DNA of 63,675 nucleotides, the filler included, from Salisapilia sapeloensis CBS 127946 (lineage: Eukaryota; Protista; Oomycota), in the NCBI GenBank assembly GCA_023334545.1. It is 5 parts of 5 records of this genome, joined end to end, with 100 filler letters (N's around TTAATTAATTAA, not from the genome) between each part and the next. Parts side by side here need not be neighbours in the genome. Positions count along the whole stretch, not along the records: positions 1 to 21,472 come from JAADVB010000281.1; 4 more parts are not named here. One strand, given 5' to 3'. The stretch's first letter is position 1. Each line of letters starts with the position of its first letter. Of the stretch, positions 1,036 to 21,472 are shown piece by piece. A model generated the notes under the pieces. The model was not told the origin of the DNA, did no database searches, and saw only the letters and a program-made list of their open reading frames with translations. The position numbers and the translations under genes were made by a program.

Positions 1036-3795
1036 ATGGTGGTGCACGGTGAGGAACCAATGTCGTCACCTGAAGCACCGGCAGCTCGGTCGAAAGATGC
1101 TTCTGGTGGCATAAAAGTTCCGGAAGGCGAGGTACATATCGAAACGGACAACGGTGGAGTAGACAGCGAGGAGGGAGAGTCTGAAGATGATGAAGACGAG
1201 GGAGATCCGGATCAAACGATCATGAACATGGGTCGGCATGACCGCATGCAGCGTATTCAAAAGGTCTTGTACGACCAACTCGTCGGTAATGATGAACGTC
1301 TGACGATGGAGCTTCGTGAACGAGAGGAAGAGGTGCGACGGATGAAGCAGAGACGGGAGGATGTGGGCGTCCAGCTCTATGGTGTGCAGCAGCAGTTAGC
1401 ACAGCTTCAAGTAGCTCTGGAAGGCTCTCATCGGAAGCTCACGACGTATCATAACGATCGCTTTGCTGCAGAAGACCTGCTCGATGAGCATAAAGAGCAA
1501 GTGGCGGAACGGAAGGCGTTGGTGGGAAAGCATCGAGCGACGCTGTACAAGACACAGACGGAACTGGACACTCTGAACGCAACGCTGCGGCAGGTTGAAA
1601 AGTATAGTGAAGAGATGAAGTATGAGATAGCTCGGACGCAACGGGAGGCACAGAAAGCCGAAGAGATGATGACGAATATGGAGAAGAGCAAAGTGAAACA
1701 GGATCTGTACATCGATAGTTTGAATGAACAATTGAAGCGACTGGAAGACCAGATTGGAGTGAGTACTGCTCATTTAAAATCACAGCAATTAGAGACTGCG
1801 GCTGCGGAGGAAACGTTGAGAGAGGCTTCTGCTCAGATGGAAGTCGTGGCTTTCGAGAAGAAACAGCTTTTGCAGCAGTGGAAGAGTGCACTCGTTGGAT
1901 TGCAACAACGGGACCAGGCTCTCCAAGCAACGCAGCAGAGTATTTCAAAGGTGAATGAAGAAGATTTGGCGTTGTCCGTGGAAGTGAAGGGGTATAAGGC
2001 ATCGATTGAAAAGGCTCAGCGAGAGCATGAAACCCTCTTGGGCACGGTTGAACGGTTTAATGCTGAGATCCGCTTCGTTGAGGAACAGATTGGATCTTTA
2101 AAGAAGGAGCAAGAGAGATTGGCGAGTCGATATGAGATGCTGACCAAGTCACTGCGACAGACAGAAGCAGAAGAAAGTAAGGTGAAGGAGGAAGGAAAGA
2201 AGCTGGATGGAGAAAACCAGCAAGTCCAGCAGCAGTTAGAAACAACGCAACGTGATCGGCATGTACTTGAAGACCAGGTTGCTAGCCTGAAGAATGAGCA
2301 AACGACAGCGAACAAGGCTGTACATAATCTAACGAAAGAGACTTTGAAGCTGCAGGGTGTAGTCCATGAGAAAGAGAATGCACTCGCAGAACTACGAAAT
2401 GAAATTGCTCGTGTAAACGTAGACATTCTGAATGTCCAATCACACATTGGTCAGCTGGAGGAGGTACAAGGACGTACGGTTGGCGACTTGCAGAATGAAG
2501 ACCGCCGTGTCGAAAAGGTTCAGTTGGAACTTCGTCAGCGCAATGATGAGATTGAAAAGAAGATGCTGCGGCTAGATCGATTAAATAAAAAGTATGAACA
2601 GCTCATGTCGAAAGTAGAAGACGAGAATACTGGGCCGTTGGAAGCAACAATTAAGAATCAAACGAGAGAGACGGCGGAGGTGCGTCGTCGGAATGCAGAG
2701 CTGCAGAAAGAATGGCTACAGATACAAACGGTGCTTGTGAATCTGTCCATTGAATCTCAGGAAATGGGGGAAAAGAATGGAGAGTTGAAAAGTAAGACTA
2801 GTGTACTCGAGCAGAAGCAATTACGATTGATGAACGATCTTGCCAAGATGACACAGGATGTCAAACAACTTCGAACGGTCATCCAGGCCATGCACACTGA
2901 TACGATCAAGCTAAATGAGTTGATTGCGAAGAATACGACGCGACAAGAAGAGCTCGTGAATATGAACCACGGCATGGAGCTTGAGTTTAAGCAGCAGCTA
3001 AAAGAGTTGGAAGCAGAGGCTATGAATGCAGAGAGACGAGCAACAGAGTTGAAAAACGAGAAACAGGAGCTTCTGGATCAGATTGTCGAAGTGGAACGGC
3101 AAATAATGCTATGGGAGAAGAAGATTTTGCTAGAGAAAGAAACGCAAGCAGCTTTGGATCCAGAAGTTGGTCAAGCAGAAGCTCGAAGTATGGAGAAGGA
3201 GATTCATCGCATGCGATTGAGACTTGAGGCTCTGCAGCGTAGCCAGGAGCAAATGCTCATTGATATGGAGCAAGCTGTGCACAAACGAGATTTGCTTGCG
3301 TTACGCGGGCGAAGCAAGAAGGACGCTGATGTAACGTATGCTGCTGTCACGGCCAAGGCATCGACATTGCAGAATAATCTGCAGAAGATGGAGAGGGATA
3401 CGATGAAGCTTGACAAGACGATCAAGAAAAAGATGATTAGTTGTGAAGACTTGACTTTCCAGTTGGAGAAAGCATCAGCCGAGCTGCACGTTGATGAAGA
3501 GCGGGTTGCCACTCTCCAGAAATCTATCAATGACTCGTTGTACGCCAAGCAGCGATTGATTGATGCAGAGTCACGAAAACTGCGATTGTTGCAACGTCTA
3601 GAGGCAGTGCGCAAGGCCGCTGCAACTAAAGGTGTGGACGAAGACAAGGCGAAAAACAACTATGATCGAGCTCGTTCGTCAGTGCTGGTCATTCAGTCTA
3701 TCATTGACAAACTTAAAAGTCAATATCCGCATCTCTCGGAAGTGCTTTCACGTGTTGCAATGCTAGCGGAGGATCCACCGGTGGAAGCTAGTTAG
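1036..3795 (+). CDS. CCDC40: Coiled-coil domain-containing protein 40 (FAP172), axonemal 96-nm ruler / inner dynein arm and N-DRC assembly factor
   Basis: 919-aa single ORF with acidic N-terminus, then long coiled coil carrying CCDC40-type segments REDVGVQLYGVQQQLAQLQ, KQDLYID, QLLQQWKSALVGLQQRD and MEKEIHRMRLR. Confidence 0.88.
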   Translation: MVVHGEEPMSSPEAPAARSKDASGGIKVPEGEVHIETDNGGVDSEEGESEDDEDEGDPDQTIMNMGRHDRMQRIQKVLYDQLVGNDERLTMELREREEEVRRMKQRREDVGVQLYGVQQQLAQLQVALEGSHRKLTTYHNDRFAAEDLLDEHKEQVAERKALVGKHRATLYKTQTELDTLNATLRQVEKYSEEMKYEIARTQREAQKAEEMMTNMEKSKVKQDLYIDSLNEQLKRLEDQIGVSTAHLKSQQLETAAAEETLREASAQMEVVAFEKKQLLQQWKSALVGLQQRDQALQATQQSISKVNEEDLALSVEVKGYKASIEKAQREHETLLGTVERFNAEIRFVEEQIGSLKKEQERLASRYEMLTKSLRQTEAEESKVKEEGKKLDGENQQVQQQLETTQRDRHVLEDQVASLKNEQTTANKAVHNLTKETLKLQGVVHEKENALAELRNEIARVNVDILNVQSHIGQLEEVQGRTVGDLQNEDRRVEKVQLELRQRNDEIEKKMLRLDRLNKKYEQLMSKVEDENTGPLEATIKNQTRETAEVRRRNAELQKEWLQIQTVLVNLSIESQEMGEKNGELKSKTSVLEQKQLRLMNDLAKMTQDVKQLRTVIQAMHTDTIKLNELIAKNTTRQEELVNMNHGMELEFKQQLKELEAEAMNAERRATELKNEKQELLDQIVEVERQIMLWEKKILLEKETQAALDPEVGQAEARSMEKEIHRMRLRLEALQRSQEQMLIDMEQAVHKRDLLALRGRSKKDADVTYAAVTAKASTLQNNLQKMERDTMKLDKTIKKKMISCEDLTFQLEKASAELHVDEERVATLQKSINDSLYAKQRLIDAESRKLRLLQRLEAVRKAAATKGVDEDKAKNNYDRARSSVLVIQSIIDKLKSQYPHLSEVLSRVAMLAEDPPVEAS

Positions 3796-6098: not shown

Positions 6099-6871
6099 CC
6101 TTCTGCAACTCTGCTCTCATAATCGCTACTCATTCCACTCATACAACCTAGTCTTCATCATGTACACGCGTGCGGAAATCAGGTGCATGGACATTCTCGT
6201 TTCTACTTTCGCTTTAGAGTTAAACTTTCTCTATTCGGCCCATCGAGTACCAGATACAAGACCAAGAAGTAGACAAACCTCATCTACAGTCAGACTCTAT
6301 TTTAACACACATCGTAGCTTTTTAAACTTTTCGTCCTCTACAAAGGCTCTTGGTTACAGAGAGTTTGTATCCTCCTCGTGCTATTGGAAGATGAGGAGCA
6401 CCAAGAAAATATTCTGGTGGTGGTACATGCCACAGTGCAGCTGATGTAATATATCTTGGTGAGGTGGAATCTGGATACGAGTGACGTCAGACAGTGATCT
6501 TCACCTGCATATCCACGAGATCAATCCAGACGACTACCATACGCTTATTTCTTAGCACAATAGAAATAGAGCAGAAGGTGATAAACACAAACCCTCCTCA
6601 GACATAACATCGTTTCGAATTCTATAGCCTTTCAGACTACGTTCAATTTGTTAAACAAAATCGATTTTTAATCCATCCGGATCCGCGTGCCACCAAGATA
6701 AGCTTTACATAGCACATAAACACTGGTCTAGAGAATCGAGTGGTGACGATGCACTCGTAGGCATGACGCAATCCGCTCCACTTCAAGTTGTGTCCTCGTC
6801 GATTCCGAGACATTCCAGTATACTACTGTCTTCCAATCAACTCATTTAACAAGTTATCAAGAGAGAAAGGG

Positions 6872-11083: not shown

Positions 11084-12606
11084 TTACGACTCTTCTTCCT
11101 CTTCTTCTGAGTCACTAGATGCTTCGGACGAGCTATCACTATCTTCCTCCACCTCTCCTTTCACTTTCTTCTCCATTTCTTCTAGCGCCCATCCAGTGCT
11201 CTCCTTGGTGAAGCGAGAGATAGCATCTCTCAACTCCTTTGCGACTTGCAGAAAGCGATCTTCTTCCAGACACTGGACCCAGACACAATAGTCTTGGATG
11301 TAAAGTGTGTTTAGCAGATACTGCGTCTCGGACTTTTCAACGATACGATACAAATCTAAGAGTACACGTAGCACCATTCGTTTCCCACGTTCCAAGATGG
11401 CGAGTGTTTCATCCAATACACGTCTGGCCAGATCGAACTGACGTAAGAGAGGGAAGGAGATCATGCGACGGACACCGGATCGAACGACATCATCTAGATT
11501 TGCCGTCGAGTCCAGCCATGAGAGAGTTGGACTGACGATACTAGCTGTCCATGTAGACTCGATGTTACTTTCTCCTTGTGTTGTCAAGTGGTCGTACGTG
11601 TATCCGATGAGGATGTCGACGAGTCCTCCGAGTAGAACAGCTTCTTCTCTACTTCCTTTCTCGATTAAATATTCTTTTCGAGGAAGACGTAGGAGAAGTT
11701 CTTGGTCGTCTTCTGAAAATAAGTCGGTGGACTCTTTGGCGGTGTCTTGTATCTGCAGTGTCTGTAGCTGTTCGCTCAAGCCTTTCGTCCGAACGACGGG
11801 GTATTTCGTCCAAAACGGCGTGTACTCCATGGCCATGGTAAAGTACGGATCTTCATCCTGACCCATGTAATCCATCAAGTAGTGTTCAATGTCGAATTGC
11901 TCTTCTTCCGCCGCCTGACGCAATCTTCGTCGTTCATCCTGATGCAGATTATCTGGATCCGGGTTGGAAACAATCTCGGAAACTGCGCCGTGCCAAGCAC
12001 GGAAGAATTCAGAGTAGGCGTTGTTGAAACCGTAGGACGGTTTCAAGTCCGTCACGTGAATCGAGTCGGTCTTATGGTCTTCATACAGTGTCTGCTTTTG
12101 CTCTAGATTTAGTAGACTGTCATCCGTCTGTGGCTTTGTTGCTGTTTCTTCTGTAAATGTTGATTCCTTGTCTCCATCCTGTGACGTCGGTGAAGAGATG
12201 ACTTCAATGAGCGAACTCTTCGGTTCTGGTGTCGCCAATGGGTTTGGACGTGGTTGGATTAGAAGCTTGGTGAGCATGTCGAGGTCTTCGAAGTGCTGGC
12301 CAGGCATCTCCTTTGGCAAGTGAACTGTGATGGTGCCATTCTCCTACTTGATATGTGAGTCGTGCTAGTCGTAGATAATGTGATGCATGACGATTTTACC
12401 TTGTTCGGGTCATAGACTGCTTTGGCATTGTCGTCATCGACTACGGCGTGAGGGAACTCGAGCTTAAGCAAGTACGGTTTGCAGTAGAACATAAAGTGGG
12501 AGCCATCAACAGTGAACTCCATGTCCGAGACACGGACGTACGGCACGTGCACATGGACGTAGACAAAGTTCTCATCTTGCGAGACGTTAAATCGAGGCGT
12601 GGACAT
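11084..12606 (-). CDS. SHQ1: H/ACA snoRNP assembly chaperone SHQ1
   Basis: N-terminal CS domain MSTPRFNVSQDENFVYVHVHVPYVR...FYCKPYLLKL; in-frame intron 12399-12344; then HFEDLDMLTKLL, YGFNNAYS, ESNIESTWT, LLNTLYIQDYCVW and GWALEEME. Confidence 0.92.
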
Positions 12607-13138
12607 TTTGAAAATGCTTCTAGACCAGTAAGGAGCAGCCAATGAACGGAGGATGCATATCAGATGCAACCAATGAACCGTCTGACAATGGCGGGAAACG
12701 TGCGACCCCATTGGCGATATTAGCAGCATGCTCGTGCGTGTGTGACCTGGCTTTACGCGTCTGTTTTCTATCCACTGTGGGGAGAGAATAAGCAGCGACT
12801 GATAAGCGGAAGAAAACGGTGCCAGTTACACTGCCATCTTCTGCGAAAGCACAGCGTGGGCTCACAACGATGGGATCTTTCCCTTGAGCGCCACTTTCGC
12901 ATATTTCTTCATATCTTTATGTCCGGGATCCAGCACAATCCTTGAAGCTACGCAGAAGAAGCGACCACAGATCACGCTTCGACTTTGTATCTTCAGCAGT
13001 CACCCGACTGTCTTTTTCTTGCAATTCTCGAAAGAAGTTCGAGCTGTAACGGTTGCTAGAACACAACTCGTTCGATTCCTATCTGTTCATTTTTCAATCC
13101 GACCTCGAGCACTCAAGCGCAACTTTTCTCTACGTATT

Positions 13139-13981
13139 ATGGACCCGATCACCGTCAAACTTTCCTGCGGACAAGAAGTTCATCGTCTCTCGGTCTCGAG
13201 CGATGAACTGAACATGAACTGGTTTGTCCGCCAAGTCAATGACCTCTTCAACCCGGGTTCCGCACGCCTGAACTCGTGGGTACTCTTGTACACGGACGAT
13301 GAAGGCGAAGAAATCACGGTCAGCATGGAGCACGAGATCGAGGAAGCGTGCCGCGTCCAGTACCGGATGAACGAAAATTCGAATGCGCCGCTCCGATTCC
13401 GCGTCGGGACGCCCCGTCCCACTTGGTCGGCCAGTCAGTTCAGCATGGAACCACTGATTCACGCGATGCAAGAGCTTTCTGCACGCGTCTCTCGCCTTGC
13501 AGAGAACACTCGGGACAGCTTCCGTTCCAGCGTTTATGTGGAACGTGGCCGTGAGTCACTTGCTGCTTCGTCTGTCCAAACTCGTCGCGCATTTACGAAC
13601 GCAGGTGCGCGTCTTCGTCAAGCGAGCTCTGTCGTTGCAGGTGAGATCTCGGGCCTCCGTCGTCGCACACGCAATGGATCTCGGGACGGCTCAGTGGATG
13701 AAAAGGAGTCGTTCTTGGGCGACAAGAGTGGTGCGACGGAATCAGAGGATGAGACGTGGGAAAAGCTGGGTGCTGCACCTGCCCATGCGGAATCCAAACC
13801 GGCTGAGACTGTCGAAGCCAAAGACCAGGTTGAAGAAGACACTGCGAGCGATGATTTGAACGTCCAGATTGGCACGATCCGCGCCATTGCCCCGGATGTC
13901 GAAGTCGCTCGTTGCCGTGAACTTCTTGAAAAGCACAATGGCAATGTGGAAGCCGTCCTTGTCGAATTGACGGACAAGTAA
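13139..13981 (+). CDS. PB1-LIR-UBA protein, p62/SQSTM1-NBR1-like selective autophagy receptor candidate (280 aa)
   Basis: PB1 with beta1 Lys (VKLSCG) and acidic OPCA motif YTDDEGEEITV; LIR-like ESEDETWEKL; C-terminal UBA/CUE-like CRELLEKHNGNVEAVLVEL. Start taken at ATG 13139, not the TTG at 12884. Confidence 0.78.
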   Translation: MDPITVKLSCGQEVHRLSVSSDELNMNWFVRQVNDLFNPGSARLNSWVLLYTDDEGEEITVSMEHEIEEACRVQYRMNENSNAPLRFRVGTPRPTWSASQFSMEPLIHAMQELSARVSRLAENTRDSFRSSVYVERGRESLAASSVQTRRAFTNAGARLRQASSVVAGEISGLRRRTRNGSRDGSVDEKESFLGDKSGATESEDETWEKLGAAPAHAESKPAETVEAKDQVEEDTASDDLNVQIGTIRAIAPDVEVARCRELLEKHNGNVEAVLVELTDK

Positions 13982-15094: not shown

Positions 15095-18072
15095 TTAACG
15101 TATAGACGCCTTGGATGTCAAGTTAGACGTCTGCTTTGCGCCCAGCACTGCTTGCTTGGGCACAGACATTGATCCATGTGGAGCTCCATTCCGAGTAGGT
15201 AGTGGAGACACAGCTGGAGAACCAGACATACTTTGAGGTGAGTTCCCACTGACAGCTACATTTTGCTTTGCTGATCCAAGCGCGACATTTCGGCATCTCG
15301 AGGCAAAATTGAGTGAACAGAGTGTCTCCCATGCATTCCATTGTACAGGACTAATGTTCACAAACATAAGCGCTTTTGAGCCTCCACTAAGCGAGTCTTG
15401 AAGCAGGAATGTCAGCTTTGAGTTCCGGTAAGGCACATGCTTACTACCGGACGCAAGTGCAGCAATCACGTCCCCAAGCGCTGAAAGAGACCTGTTGATG
15501 TTCTGGGCTTCTTTCAACCGTTGCCCAGTAGCAGCAGTCTTCCCCACTCTTTCCGATCCTGCTAAATCAATCAGGTGGAGCTTTGACGAACGAATACGAC
15601 CGTCGTTGGAACTCTTTGTCTCAATTTTGATGGAAACGACAAGATGCGAACGACTGGAGTGCTCATTTACATCGTGAGCACCGACACTGCGGTGCGAGTG
15701 ACCGAGTTTCATCAAATGTACGACGTCATCTTGGCAGTGGACATCCATCTCGGACAAATTCTCAGCGTAGACCCCTGCTTTACCTAAACGCAATTCCAGA
15801 CCAACTTTAGCACCTGTCTTGGTAGGTGATCCGTACGCAGACATATCCTGCAGTAGGTCCACAATCGTTTCGTTATATACTTCTAGAATACTTAGTTTCA
15901 TAGAGCATTCAAAGTTCCCTGATGTGGCACGTTCATCTCGAATAGCAAACAGCTCTTGCAGAGCGCGATAGTTCACACCTCGATCTGTTGCTGTTCCTTC
16001 CATCGTATGCGTCTTACCACTACCTGTTTGTCCGTACGCGAATATACAGACGCTACAAGGATCCGTGAGAATGAGTAACTGCAAGAGATTTTACAGACTA
16101 AGTAAAGCGTACTTGTATCCGTCTAAAGCACTGACGACTAGCTGACGTGTTTGCTCAAAGACATCCGATTGAGAGCTTTCTGGCTGGAACACATGATCGA
16201 ACTCGAACGTGTGCTTTTGACCAGTTCCTTTGTCCGTATCACCATTCACAAGTAACTCCAGACTTTGCATGTCTTCACCTGGAAAGAAGACAGCAGTACT
16301 GTCCTGGTTGCTAGCTTTCTCCGGTGGTTGTATTGGACGCACACGGCAGAAGACTCGAATATTGCCTTGTAGCTCCATCAGACGGTTGTGTAGTTTTCGT
16401 CGACTGTCGACTTCCTTCGAATAGAGCTCAGACAATCTTGCTGTCTCCGCTTTGGCCTTTGCTATCTCCTTCGCAGCCTATGGATACACATTAGTGGCAG
16501 AGCACGTACAACTTTACCTGTGGAAACTTGGATAGCACGTACCTCTTGTTGAGCAAGAGCTCTTCCTTCTTCCTTCGCACGGACAATAAGCTGCTCTTGC
16601 TTACTTATAGTCTCATTCATTTTCTTGAGCTCTTCTTTGCTCTGAAGAACCTCGTGCTCCAATTGTTCCACTCGTTCCGTAATCGCTTTCTTCTCCTTCT
16701 CTCGATTTCGTAGTTCCTGCGCTAGAGCCTGTCCACGAGTCTTCATGTCTGTCAGTTGAACTGTCATTGCTTCTTTCTGCTTTGTAGCGGCTTCTTCCAC
16801 TTCGTTCTTTTCAGCTTTGATTTGGTCTAGTGCCTTCTTCATTTCCAAAACTCGCTGCTTTTCCTGTTCTAGTCCAGCCGTTTGGGCACTTTGCGTCTCG
16901 TTTTTATAGTCGTCCAAACTCTGCTTTGCTTCCCTTAACTCTTGTTGGTAGCTATCCAACTTTTGTTGTAAATTTCCATTCGCCTCTTTCTCTTCCATGA
17001 GCTTTTTGTCTTTGCTCGCAAGTTCGTCTTGTAGTTCTTTTACCTGGGACTCGTTGCTTGTTTGATCGGCTGTAGAATGCTTTAAGTCCGCTCGTAATGT
17101 CTGAATTTGTTGCTGGGAAGCGCGGAGGTCGTTAATCAGCTTGTCTCGTTGGACCTTCATGGCGTCCAACTCAATCGACGACGACGCGAATCCTTCCTTA
17201 GATTCGGCTTTGTTTTCGTCTGCATCCGTTCGAGCTTCCAATTCATTTCGAGCTCGAATAAGTGCCTTCTTCATCTTTTTATTTGCCTCGCGACCGTCAT
17301 TTTCTTTCTTCAACGCATCCGTGAGCTGCTCCGACAATGACCTCAAGTCTTCTTCCATTTGTTCTTTTTCATCTCGAAGGCTGTCAATAGTAGCTTTCTC
17401 TTTTCCTAGCTGTGCTTTTAAAGTTTCCACTTCCTCTGTAAGCTCTTGTACAACTGCATCATGATTGTCTTGTTCTTTCGGTTCCTGGATATGCCCAGCT
17501 TGTGTCATAGATGAGCTTGCCCACGTTACTCGACGATGGTTTTGACTCGATGGAAACGATGATACATCATGAGCATTACTTTCCAACTTCTTACGTCGTA
17601 GGTTTTGGAATAACTGTCGAAATTGGTCATCCGAAGGATGTTCCCATCGACTCTCACCGGTAACCTCGTTATAGTAGTATGGCTGCTCAGTTTCATCTTC
17701 CGCAATATGGTACCATCCGTCCGGAAGCGGTGCTACGAGAGACTCGCGAGCAATCCACAGGTACTCAGCATCATTAATAGGGTCGATGCCTAACCGAAGT
17801 GCGTGCTCTTCGACGCCAGCCTGAAACAGCTCAGGGTCCGCTGCTTCCATGCGAGCAGACTCCTCTCCAGAGGCTAAAGGTACCTGAAGGTCGTACTCTT
17901 CAAAGTTATCGTATTGTTCAAAATATTCAAAACCGAGTGAATTCGTAGCTGCTTTCGCTTCCTGATCATAGGATGCAGTATCTGGAGATACCACGGAAGC
18001 CTTCACTTCCTCCTCTTCATCCGAATCACTTCCTTCGAATGCCAAACTCAATAGATTATTGCTCTCCGCCAT
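15095..18072 (-). CDS. Kinesin-14 (C-terminal motor) with N-terminal CEP164-type WW module and coiled-coil stalk (950 aa, 3 exons)
   Basis: Exons 18072-16543, 16477-16113 and 16052-15095 splice in frame (total 2853 nt). Kinesin-14 neck RRKLHNRLMELQGNIRVFCRVRP, P-loop GQTGSGKT, switch motifs SSRSH and DLAGSE, and HVPYRNSKLTFLL. Confidence 0.9.
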
Positions 18073-18260: not shown

Positions 18261-19667
18261 ATGGTGTCTTTGCATACCATCATATATGCCTGCTTGGCGA
18301 TACTATCGACATGGCCTGTCCAAGGTGCCAGTATTCATGTAAAGATTCATGAGAGTCCTCACAAGGCGAAGGAGTCCGTGGAGTCTAAGCACCTCTACCA
18401 CATCAAAGGAGACAAGAGGGACATAGGAAATCTCTTGGCAAAGAAGACGAACGGTGTAGATGTATGGAATGTACAGGCACAAGACGATATGGCGGTGGTA
18501 GATGTCCACGCGACGAAGAAAGATGCAGAGAACCTTGTCCACTCTGTGCCAAGCCATGCCCACCACCATGCAAAGGGATATTCTCATGGACGTAAACATA
18601 AGCATGTGAAGCTATGGGAGGATGAAATGGATGAGGAAGAAGAGATCGCTCGAGACAGGAGAGAGGTAAAGGCATGTCTTGATGACCACGGAGAAGACTT
18701 TGTGGACGAGGTGCAGACCGAGGACTATAACTACACCGCCTCGTCCTACTTTGAATGTTTCCGTCCTTATGACCAGACCTATCATTTCTTCGATACGCTC
18801 GCAGAAGCGAATCCAGACCTCATGACAAAAGAGCCGAACATTTCCACGACATACGAAGGCAGGCCGATCCATGCCTATCGAATCAGCATTTCGACCGAAA
18901 AGAAGAAGTCTCTTTACATCCAAGCGCTAATTCATCCTCGCGAGTGGCAAGCAGGTGCATCTACGGCATTTGCAACTGCTTCACTAGTAATGAACTGGAA
19001 GCATGGGGAACAAGACGCTGTCAAGGCACTAGAGGAGTTTGACTGGTACATCGTTCCGATCGTCAATGTCGACGGATACATTTACTCGTGGGAAAAGGAT
19101 CGACTATGGCGTACGAACAGAGACATGGAAGGCACGTTAAATTCCGGAGAGCATGTCGGTGTGGATCTGAATCGGAATTTCGGCCCGGATGAATTTTATG
19201 AGGAGAATATTAAGCATGCCGACGATGAGACGTACCCTGGTGAGCATCCTCTGAGCGAACCTTCCTCTGAAGGCATTATGGAATACCTTCGAGATGTACA
19301 TGAGCTCAGTGGAGTGATTGATATGCATAGCTTTGGTGGAGAAGTACTTCGTCCTTTTAGTGATCAAAGTGACGGGATGGACAAAGCGCATGAATCGAAA
19401 TTAAAGCATCTAGGAGATGCTGTTGCTAACGTCATGGGTTATGAGAGCAAGACAGGTGCAGACCTTTATCTTGCTTATGGGTGCTTTGACGATGGCGTAT
19501 CACATGAGTTTAACTTGACCGTTCCAGCGGTGACATTCGAGGTAGAAGGAGACTTTTTCACTGCGAAACAAAGCACGATCCGAGATGTCGGTGGAAACGT
19601 GTATCAAGGTTGGTTGCAGTTTGCAAAAGAAGCTTTGGACTATAAGAAGTTCATCGATAGCTTGTAG
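18261..19667 (+). CDS. Secreted M14 zinc metallocarboxypeptidase (prepro form)
   Basis: Signal peptide; Zn motif HPREW (HxxE), DLNRNF, DMHSFG and catalytic-Glu region AVTFEV. Confidence 0.9.
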   Translation: MVSLHTIIYACLAILSTWPVQGASIHVKIHESPHKAKESVESKHLYHIKGDKRDIGNLLAKKTNGVDVWNVQAQDDMAVVDVHATKKDAENLVHSVPSHAHHHAKGYSHGRKHKHVKLWEDEMDEEEEIARDRREVKACLDDHGEDFVDEVQTEDYNYTASSYFECFRPYDQTYHFFDTLAEANPDLMTKEPNISTTYEGRPIHAYRISISTEKKKSLYIQALIHPREWQAGASTAFATASLVMNWKHGEQDAVKALEEFDWYIVPIVNVDGYIYSWEKDRLWRTNRDMEGTLNSGEHVGVDLNRNFGPDEFYEENIKHADDETYPGEHPLSEPSSEGIMEYLRDVHELSGVIDMHSFGGEVLRPFSDQSDGMDKAHESKLKHLGDAVANVMGYESKTGADLYLAYGCFDDGVSHEFNLTVPAVTFEVEGDFFTAKQSTIRDVGGNVYQGWLQFAKEALDYKKFIDSL

Positions 19668-19821
19668 CACTTTAACAAGTTGACGTCCAGAGAAGACTTC
19701 ACTTTGTCGATAGGTTTCAAGATGGATAAGAGCGACATAAATATAGATGATTTCAACAATATTGGAGCAACAAATGAGTTCTTGAAATTTACCATTTTGC
19801 CGACTAATTCCAAGCAGCAAG

Positions 19822-21011
19822 ATGATGCGAGCGAAAATCATTTGCTCTAGTCCTGATGAATGGATTGATGAGCTTCCAGAAAGTCTACGTCATGAGTTTT
19901 CGATGGAAGAGTTGGAGCAAATGAAGCAACAGGTTGGATTCTAGTACGGCGATAAAGTGAATGACGTGACCGAAGTGATATGAGTTAGTTTCTGGACTTC
20001 GATACGAGTGGCGATGGAAGCATTGCGCCGGACGAGCTATTTGTTTTGATGAAGTCGATGGGTGTGGAGATTACTATAGACGAGGTATCTATGGTTATGA
20101 CGGAAGATGAGGCTATCCATATCATGTAAGCTCTGAGTAGATCCAGGAGCTTATTGATAGAGTGGACGACAATTACTCGGGCGAGTTGGAATATCCAGAA
20201 TTTGTTCGAGTAAGGAGGCATATACGAATAGCAGAGTCTGCTACTGAAATTTCGATAGCTTATAAGTGAGTTTCGACGTGGAAGTGGTGATAAGCTAGCC
20301 TACTTTATCCAGCATTCCAAGCTTGTGCTTTCCATTCGAATGGAACTGAAGGATTTAAATGAGCACCCGACTGCATACTGTTCAGTGGAAGGAGTCAAAG
20401 GTACGAAACGTGTACTACGATAGAAGGAAATGACGAAAATATACATATACTGTGTATAGAAAACGCTTGGGAATGGAACGGAAGGATCAATGGTCCTGTC
20501 GGAAGTCCGTATGAAGAAAAAACATATCGATTTCAGCTTCGGTAAGCCAAGTCGAAAGGCGATATAATTGTACCTCTGTCCTGTGTTGAAACTTTCATTA
20601 CAGCTTCTCGGAAGGATATCCGTACGAAGCGCCGGCTTTGACTTGGTTCACTCCGATCTATCACCCTAATTTCATTCCGGTAGGAAGCTTTTCTGTTTGA
20701 GTGATACCAATTTCCAGCATACTAAATTCTTGCTCAAATAGCTGTTAAACGGAAAGATGCAGATATACGGTCTACTTGGCAATTGGGAGTCTCACTGGCG
20801 TGCGAGGAATCTTTTGGATGCACTGGAAGCCCTTCTTAGTGAACCAAATGAAAATGCGATTGAAAAGTTCATACAGGAAACCGATCGTATGCGGCAATAT
20901 CAACCTCCTAACAGCTTATCCTTACTCAGCCGAGCATCTACAATGGAATGCATAGCTCTTTACCGCTCTCATCGAGATAAGTATATAAGTGTCGCGCAAA
21001 GCTTTGGCTAA
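19822..21011 (+). CDS. Two-EF-hand (calmodulin N-lobe-like) + ubiquitin E2-variant (UEV) fusion protein, at least 7 exons; start at 19822 or 19722
   Basis: Introns 19933-19988, 20085-20140, 20210-20258, 20401-20459, 20542-20603 and 20680-20741 (all GT-AG, 49-62 nt, phases compatible). They yield FLDFDTSGDGSIAPDEL...RVDDNYSGELEYPEF followed by the UBC fold GPVGSPYEE...YPYEAP...IYHPNF. Confidence 0.85.
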
Positions 21012-21472
21012 CACGACTGCTATCCAAAAGACCAACAATAATACAGTAACATACTGAGCCGCACTGCGTTTCGTCTACACACGATGAAGCGTTATCATTC
21101 AGACCTGTATTCGCGTTTTAGCAGTCATGTAAGAACTGTCGCTGCATACTGTGTGTCTTCGTCGTTACTAGAGCTATGGACTATGGACTATCAATGATCT
21201 CGAGACCGTGACTGCACACGCATGGCAATCTCGGACAGCGATCGAAGCTTCCACTACTCGATGTACCTTGAAAAGTCGTAGACATACTTCGATCTTTTTA
21301 AAGATGACGGAACGACTTGTAGACACTATAGACCAGTCCACTAGACACTTTTGAGCATTCTCTACTCATAGGTGCCAAAATTGGGAGTTTGAAAGACAAA
21401 AGTTTGGTCGTCGACTCGAGCTCGCTACCTTGGGTTTTGCGCTCGAGGATGTTGTGTTGGCGGCTTGGCTCT

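Follow-up and report, generated by a model that had tools for sequence, protein, structure and literature searches.

An EF-hand pair joined to a ubiquitin-conjugating fold without the catalytic cysteine: an oomycete gene family seen from Salisapilia sapeloensis

Background

Does a short-intron gene of the oomycete Salisapilia sapeloensis CBS 127946 (assembly GCA_023334545.1) join a calcium sensor to a ubiquitin-conjugating (UBC) fold that lacks its catalytic cysteine, and, if so, what might the product do? The question was raised by a preliminary description of the DNA considered here, which we call the window: the whole stretch of 63,675 nucleotides (nt), filler included, made of five joined parts, the first of which (record JAADVB010000281.1) carries the gene. 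The gene and its protein are referred to below as EF-UBC. We consider it fairly probable that EF-UBC is a conserved oomycete non-catalytic UBC-fold protein with a built-in Ca2+ sensor, which would serve as a Ca2+-responsive adaptor in spore stages.

The downstream effectors of Ca2+ signalling, which is central to how oomycete spores develop, are known only in small number. A protein that carries a Ca2+ sensor and a ubiquitin-system fold on one chain is a candidate for connecting the two signalling systems, and one open to testing. The proteins and their two Pfam domains are already visible in public databases. To our knowledge, the variable catalytic-Cys column, the probable UBE2D origin, the conserved introns, the spore-stage expression (read from published data) and the syntenic deletion in Peronospora are new. 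Below, P. stands for Phytophthora.

Results

The gene model

EF-UBC lies on the + strand at 19822-21011 and has 7 exons and 6 introns; its spliced translation gives 281 amino acids (aa) followed by TAA (21009-21011). The seven joined segments form an uninterrupted 846-nt coding sequence, and all six introns (56, 56, 49, 59, 62 and 62 nt) are GT-AG. The exons are as follows.

19822..19932, + strand: exon 1 (aa 1-37), N-terminal segment with the conserved LPESL+HEFS.EELEQMKQQ, including the entering helix of EF-hand 1; the ortholog proteins share this start.
19989..20084, + strand: exon 2 (aa 38-69, 96 nt), EF-hand 1; Pfam EF-hand_6, E 3e-4 for this piece alone.
20141..20209, + strand: exon 3 (aa 70-92, 69 nt), EF-hand 2; Pfam EF-hand_1, E 0.014.
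20259..20400, + strand: exon 4 (aa 93-139, 142 nt), end of the EF-hand 2 exit helix, invariant RRG hinge, extended UBC alpha-1, and beta-1.
20460..20541, + strand: exon 5 (82 nt), UBC beta-2/beta-3 and the GP..SPY motif; Pfam UQ_con positions 27-51, E 1.3e-3.
20604..20679, + strand: exon 6 (76 nt), UBC YPYEAP loop and IYHPNF; Pfam UQ_con positions 53-74, E 3e-4.
20742..21011, + strand: exon 7 (aa 193-281 and TAA), strand LLNGKMQIYGLL, crossover helix, family-specific helical insert, two C-terminal helices, and Cys262.

Taken piece by piece against Pfam, exons 2 and 3 match EF-hand models and exons 5 and 6 match UQ_con, and the matches are colinear; the two UQ_con matches are individually under the cut-off because the pieces are short. 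Exon 7 alone gave only weak matches to designed armadillo-repeat proteins in Pfam and PDB. The spliced protein matches the P. cinnamomi ortholog with a blastp E of 1e-116 and scores 395 bits against the oomycete family profile, aligned end to end. The six short introns and the protein of about 280 aa claimed by the preliminary description are thus borne out, and all the motifs that it quoted are present in the window sequence. We regard the gene, the fusion and the loss of the Cys as almost certainly real.

The start was described at 19722. This ATG is out of frame and opens a 42-codon open reading frame (ORF), which stops at 19850 and overlaps the true start at 19822 (MMRAKII..., matching the ortholog start MKVKV...). 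The spacer between the stop of the preceding carboxypeptidase gene and the start of EF-UBC is 155 nt and contains two matches, at ~19699 and ~19797, to YCAYTYY, which we take to be the oomycete initiator-like motif. Given the short spacer and these matches, the upstream ATG may lie outside the mRNA or act as an upstream ORF. The ORF scan found no + strand ORF of at least 100 aa at the locus, which is why the ORF track missed the gene; its described invisibility holds for the window genome and not elsewhere, as the orthologs are annotated in many oomycete proteomes.

Exon structure in other oomycetes

Three annotated orthologs were mapped onto their genomic loci, with the following exon lengths (nt).

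Window: 111/96/69/142/82/76/270.
P. infestans PITG_22667: 108/96/69/142/82/76/339.
Lagenidium: 111/96/69/142/82/70/324.
Saprolegnia: 90/37+59/69/142/82/128/248.

The five internal exons (96/69/142/82/76) are the same in the window and in PITG_22667 and nearly the same in Lagenidium; those of 69 and 142 nt are common to the window and all three mapped orthologs. By this comparison, the six intron positions are ancestral in Peronosporomycetes, and five are common with Saprolegniales. Separate EF and UBC transcripts are ruled out by exon 4, which by itself spans the end of EF-hand 2 and UBC alpha-1/beta-1; the placing of both halves on one transcript unit, as first described, stands, with the structure conserved in all three species.

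The EF-hand half

Loop 1, DTSGDGSIAPDE (20001-20036), conforms to a strict EF-hand pattern of the PROSITE type. Loop 2, DDNYSGELEYPE (20165-20200), keeps all ligand positions and fails the strict pattern only by Y at the non-ligand position 4. Both loops are 12 residues long, have a Gly as residue 6 and carry ligands at 1, 3, 5 and 12. In all orthologs the loop 2 ligand positions 1, 3, 5, 9 and 12 are conserved, and most orthologs fit the pattern at both loops. EF-hand_7 scores 44 and 48 bits in full-length orthologs, over the Pfam cut-off, and against PDB the family profile positions 24-94 align to calmodulin residues 4-74, that is, to the N-lobe. The calmodulin N-lobe of the preliminary description is therefore supported, with one of its two canonical loops being strict and the other not. 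The protein is not calmodulin proper (four EF-hands, two lobes, ~149 aa, no other domain), and the UniRef name "Calmodulin" on several orthologs is misleading: one EF pair is followed by a UBC fold. We consider Ca2+ binding by the pair quite probable.

The Achlya and Globisporangium ultimum models have a 15-19 aa insertion within EF-hand loop 1. In Achlya it sits exactly at the extra intron of Saprolegnia (37+59), so it is probably an unspliced intron rather than biology.

The UBC half and the lost active site

Full-length orthologs score 88 and 79 bits against UQ_con (PF00179; cut-off 27). In the PDB search, the family profile positions 116-229 and 273-295 align to UBE2D2/UbcH5b with E 2e-29; all 60 matches listed are UBE2D chains or calmodulin, the top ones being the C85S and C85K variants of UBE2D2. 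AlphaFold2 models of the P. cinnamomi and Saprolegnia orthologs (predicted local distance difference test, pLDDT, 81 and 82) contain the UBC fold (alpha-1, four strands, crossover helix and two C-terminal helices) with an additional helical insert; the UBC part gives a target-normalised template modelling (TM) score of 0.85 to UbcH5b in Foldseek at ~27% identity. The claim of a full UBC fold is supported. A helical insert of 25-45 aa before alpha-3 is specific to the family. On the strength of the profile and fold matches, we judge that the UBC half derives from the UBE2D/UbcH5 (UBC4/5-like) lineage of ubiquitin-conjugating enzymes (E2s).

The catalytic-Cys column, HPN and the EF loops were compared over 14 family members. 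HPN is found at 20662-20670 in the window copy; it is retained in Peronosporomycetes and reads HLN or HVN in Saprolegniales. The Cys column is occupied in the window by Q199 (20760-20762), in agreement with the preliminary description, by S in Phytophthora, two Globisporangium species, Saprolegnia, Achlya and Thraustotheca, by V in Pythium oligandrum and one metagenomic member, by A in Lagenidium and by P in Aphanomyces. Among the aligned members it is never C, so the loss is conserved. The arrangement of active E2s, with a Cys ~8 residues after HPN within G-x-[IL]-C-[LM], is absent. Since the column varies freely, the nucleophile was lost before the split of Saprolegniales and Peronosporales, without replacement at that site. 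The preliminary description had raised the possibility of a Cys-restoring splice at intron 6: none of the eight in-frame alternative GT-AG splices around it gives a Cys, and the retained intron leads to a stop. Judging by sequence, the protein is unable to form the canonical E2 thioester.

Another cysteine, Cys262 (20949-20951; helix alpha-3; motif ECI/DCL/DCF), is invariant in 14/14 aligned members and aligns with UbcH5b Ile123 in the profile alignment.

Two ideas about this half were dropped. One was a single rigid continuous helix linking the domains; the second AlphaFold2 model broke the helix at RRG. Since the two models disagree, RRG is treated as a hinge and not as a rigid rod. The other was to read a K63E-like change in loop L4 as a sign against RING binding; an ordinary UBE2E-like E2 also has E there.

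The family and its distribution

Exon 7 searched against 1.84 billion representative proteins gave 7 matches only, of which three were traced to oomycetes and two more lie on contigs with an oomycete-type M14 carboxypeptidase gene. One match is a 305-aa P. cactorum protein of the same architecture; the family was gathered from a search with this protein and then from a search with a 12-sequence profile. The profile search found orthologs only in Phytophthora (many species), Pythium, Globisporangium, Lagenidium, Saprolegnia, Achlya, Aphanomyces and Thraustotheca, so both major oomycete lineages are represented. Examples are PITG_22667 (P. infestans), PHYSODRAFT_510020 (P. sojae), Poli38472_013001 (Pythium oligandrum), N0F65_007060 (Lagenidium) and SPRG_03553 (Saprolegnia); publicly, the orthologs are named hypothetical protein, Calmodulin or E2. 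Compared with the window protein, members from Peronosporales, Pythiales and Lagenidium show 50-55% identity and Thraustotheca, the sole Saprolegniales member compared directly, 43%. The architecture, the intron positions and the missing Cys are alike in the orthologs and the window copy; the latter differs in its shorter C-terminus and insert and in the lost GG of SPYEGGVF.

Outside oomycetes the profile search gave E2-only or EF-only proteins and no full-length match. In the AlphaFold DB fold-cluster search, the confident full-length matches were two Aphanomyces orthologs only; other long alignments were few, with a root-mean-square deviation of 11-22 Å and 13-21% identity. The ESM Atlas shape search contained no EF+UBC cluster, only E2s with other partner domains, and the feature search there gave only generic EF-hand clusters with scores of at most 0.70. 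As far as these searches reach, the architecture is confined to oomycetes. The literature search for PITG_22667, PHYSODRAFT_510020, SPRG_03553 and the oomycete EF-hand/UQ_con combination found them in no paper, so the prior characterization that the preliminary description allowed for did not turn up.

Public models often merge neighbours here: five fuse EF-UBC to prefoldin and one to NPP1, and two fuse the M14 gene to prefoldin. Gene predictors are apparently misled by the shortness of the introns and of the spacers between genes.

Expression in P. infestans

The expression of PITG_22667 was read from the life-stage RNA sequencing data of PMC5322657 (Additional file 2), in counts per million (CPM).

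Isolate 1306: mycelium 0.33/0.44; sporangia 18.3/17.3; cleaving sporangia 21.4/17.2; zoospores 8.0/4.6; germinated cysts 6.2/6.5.
Isolate 88069: mycelium 0.2-0.6; sporangia 14.4/14.4; cleaving sporangia 18.0/19.1; zoospores 15.9/15.8; germinated cysts were sampled in isolate 1306 only.

The gene is nearly silent in mycelium and rises ~35-55-fold from mycelium to sporangia and zoospores. According to the same study, most two-EF-hand proteins of unknown role are sporangia-induced, and zoospore release is blocked by Ca2+-channel blockers and a calmodulin antagonist (PMC5322657). The 257 flagella-associated P. infestans proteins compiled in PMC3471859 do not include PITG_22667; this list would miss an oomycete-only gene because it was built by comparison with other flagellates.

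The locus and the deletion in Peronospora

The upstream neighbour of EF-UBC is an M14 gene.

18261..19667, + strand: M14 zinc carboxypeptidase gene, single exon; Pfam Peptidase_M14, E 3e-44.

M14 orthologs are found 1-3 locus tags from EF-UBC in Pythium oligandrum, P. ramorum, P. capsici, P. cactorum, P. boehmeriae and P. pseudosyringae. Prefoldin is the downstream neighbour in P. infestans and Lagenidium; it was not found within 460 nt downstream of the window gene.

In Peronospora farinosa and Peronospora destructor, public models fuse M14 to prefoldin. In the former, the M14 ORF ends at ~6470 and the prefoldin ATG is at 6637, leaving a gap of ~165 nt, in which tblastn finds no remnant of EF-UBC; in the latter, the M14 and prefoldin matches are ~330 nt apart with no EF-UBC match between them (tblastn). 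The gene is cleanly deleted between syntenic neighbours in the two species. Peronospora is not known to make zoospores. In Peronosclerospora, M14 is present and no EF-UBC was found within 6 kb. Downy-mildew members were absent from the profile search, the database of which includes proteomes of Peronospora, Peronosclerospora and Hyaloperonospora; for H. arabidopsidis the loss is suggested solely by the absent match in this search.

Some side observations concern the neighbourhood. The window M14 protein has a hydrophobic, signal-peptide-like N-terminus and is 43-50% identical to its best database relatives, which suggests that the source organism has no close annotated relative; it is about equally distant from Phytophthora, Pythium and Lagenidium. 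At the P. infestans locus, an intact gene with Jacalin-lectin and NPP1 (NLP) domains (2106-3665) lies directly upstream of EF-UBC, probably between it and M14, which is not within the 4-kb flank; neither the window nor the Peronospora loci have it. Strong spore induction is also recorded (PMC5322657) for the neighbouring identifier PITG_22668, whichever gene it denotes. By Pfam, the other ORFs of this part of the window are a 919-aa coiled-coil protein with a BRE1 E3-ligase domain match, a kinesin motor, a WW-domain coiled-coil protein, SHQ1 and a weak PB1 match (1036-3795, +; 15095-16084, -; 16462-18072, -; 11084-12319, -; 12884-13981, +). No link between these ORFs and EF-UBC was seen.

Discussion

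We presume that ubiquitin would not be carried as a thioester and that the protein would act as an adaptor in spore stages. Through the hinge and alpha-1, the helix with which active E2s bind the activating enzyme (E1) and the ligase (E3), Ca2+ binding by the EF pair would uncover or turn a binding surface. In consequence, the UBC fold would change how it binds, non-covalently, a ubiquitin-system partner, be it ubiquitin, an active E2 or an E3. A role in the spore stages appears reasonably probable; a ubiquitin-system partner is a tentative proposal, for which we would claim rather less than an even chance. The connection with zoospores suggested by the preliminary description has circumstantial support from the spore-stage expression of PITG_22667 and the deletion in Peronospora.

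Several points weigh against this explanation. In a direct Ca2+-to-ubiquitin adaptor, the binding and the Ca2+ response are alike putative. The splicing of the window copy is predicted from homology. One AlphaFold2 model has a 41-residue continuous helix from EF-hand 2 into alpha-1 and the other a break at RRG. The backside ubiquitin-contact residue, which we take to be Ser22 in UbcH5, is not conserved in the family. The loss in Peronospora was seen at the syntenic site only, a relocated and unannotated copy being possible elsewhere, and the loss survey covered neither zoospore-forming downy mildews nor Albugo. The level of PITG_22667 in cleaving sporangia is unchanged by the Ca2+-signalling inhibitors verapamil, trifluoperazine and 2-APB and is modest (~20 CPM); moreover, since PMC5322657 gives more than 4200 P. 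infestans genes as induced in sporangia, the spore-stage pattern is suggestive and not specific. The window copy, finally, departs from the family. The near-universal E2 motif SPYEGGVF reads SPYEEKTY in exon 5 (20484-20520; GG to EK), its second Gly being invariant in the 12-member ortholog alignment; WESHW stands where orthologs have WxPEW; the insert is ~11 aa shorter; and the protein ends in ...SVAQSFG, ~8-12 aa before the orthologs' ...LT.QCA..., without the QCA tail. The short C-terminus may be a recent premature stop or a genuine shortening. Read on in frame past the TAA (region 20985-21060), the sequence gives H-D-C-Y-P, the Cys of which lies close to where the orthologs have that of QCA.

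These departures, together with Y at position 4 of loop 2, could mean that the family is real and the window copy is decaying or non-functional. We find this very unlikely: the frame is open through seven exons, the twelve splice sites are all canonical, every Ca-ligand position, HPN and Cys262 are kept, the copy still scores as given above against the family profile, and an unselected gene at ~55% identity is expected to have gained stops or frameshifts. It could also be supposed that the fusion itself is a gene-model artefact composed of two adjacent genes or of chance exons, considering how often public models at the locus are wrong, several being fused to the downstream prefoldin or the upstream NPP1. 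This supposition is already effectively refuted by exon 4, which holds parts of both halves, by the exon lengths and phases kept in three distant oomycetes, and by the same architecture in independent annotations from more than 15 species.

Of the functional alternatives, the one to be taken most seriously, although we consider it rather unlikely, is that the UBC fold is a pure protein scaffold outside the ubiquitin system and a Ca2+-regulated part of a spore-specific cytoskeletal, vesicle or flagellar complex. A parallel is AKTIP/FTS, a Cys-less UBC-fold protein in the Hook/FHF dynein-adaptor complex. A scaffold would accord with the deletion of the gene in the zoospore-less Peronospora, the non-conserved equivalent of Ser22, the change of WSPAL to WxPEW in loop L7, and an active-site column free to vary, as well as with the induction of the gene in spore stages together with flagellar, channel and Ca-binding genes (PMC5322657). 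Yet HPN, the YPF/YxxP loop and E2 surface motifs are conserved well beyond the likely need of fold stability, and PITG_22667 is outside the flagellar list of PMC3471859, with the limit of that list noted above. Far less probable is a cryptic active enzyme, with Cys262 as a new nucleophile or with Ser/Thr at the old site forming an oxyester. The invariance of Cys262 from Saprolegnia to Phytophthora would fit it, as would the HPN retained in Peronosporomycetes, the Asn of which supports catalysis in E2s. However, with Q, S, V, A or P at the canonical site, the family has not preserved any one chemistry; HPN is altered in Saprolegniales; and the alignment of Cys262 with Ile123 of alpha-3 places it outside the known active site.

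Our preferred explanation thus remains the non-catalytic, Ca2+-responsive adaptor of spore stages. It is tempting to go further and propose an oomycete-specific Ca2+-gated pseudo-E2 switch, turning a UBE2D-type E2/E3 pair on or off, or an E2-like enzyme with the active site relocated to Cys262; taken together, these bolder versions are improbable. If the switch were true, the Ca2+ transients of sporangial cleavage, zoospore swimming and encystment would be coupled to ubiquitin-chain building or E3 activity, and the gene would be dispensable after the loss of zoospores, as in Peronospora. The fusion of EF-hands with a Cys-less E2, not found outside oomycetes in our searches, would give the pseudo-E2 class one more, independent origin and a regulatory input that is new to it. 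In practical terms, short-intron genes are missed or mis-merged in oomycete annotations.

Comparison with known systems

UBE2D/UbcH5 (yeast Ubc4/5), the class I E2s, are the closest by profile and fold; EF-UBC retains their HPN, YPF.PP loop and crossover helix as well as the two C-terminal helices. Unlike them, the EF-UBC family has no catalytic Cys, has WxPEW in place of WSPAL, the 25-45 aa insert and an N-terminally extended alpha-1, and is fused to an EF pair.

EF-UBC was initially described as a UEV, and it is a UEV or pseudo-E2 in the broad sense only, i.e., a UBC fold without the catalytic Cys; that wording stands, while an assignment to the MMS2 or TSG101 type does not, because HPN and the C-terminal helices are kept. 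MMS2/UEV1 (UBE2V1/2) likewise have the UBC fold without the active-site Cys and are presumably non-catalytic; they have neither HPN nor the two C-terminal helices, and their mode of action is to bind UBC13 together with the acceptor ubiquitin. In EF-UBC, HPN is present, two C-terminal helices are predicted, and UEV1 does not occur among the 60 listed PDB matches; the loss of the Cys is therefore independent of that in MMS2/UEV1. The Pfam scan of the orthologs gave UQ_con and EF-hand families only and no match to the TSG101 UEV profile PF05743.

ALG-2 binds ESCRT-I/TSG101 in a Ca2+-dependent manner, according to PMC7865452. As in EF-UBC, an EF-hand Ca2+ sensor works there with a Cys-less UBC-fold protein, but in trans: ALG-2, which has a penta-EF-hand, and the UEV (TSG101/Vps23) are two distinct chains, and this UEV belongs to PF05743, whereas EF-UBC orthologs belong to PF00179. 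A general likeness exists to plant COP10, which is the UEV in the CDD complex, and to AKTIP/FTS: each has a UBC fold without the Cys, and they serve as an E2 enhancer or a scaffold. Unlike EF-UBC, neither is known to have a Ca2+ sensor.

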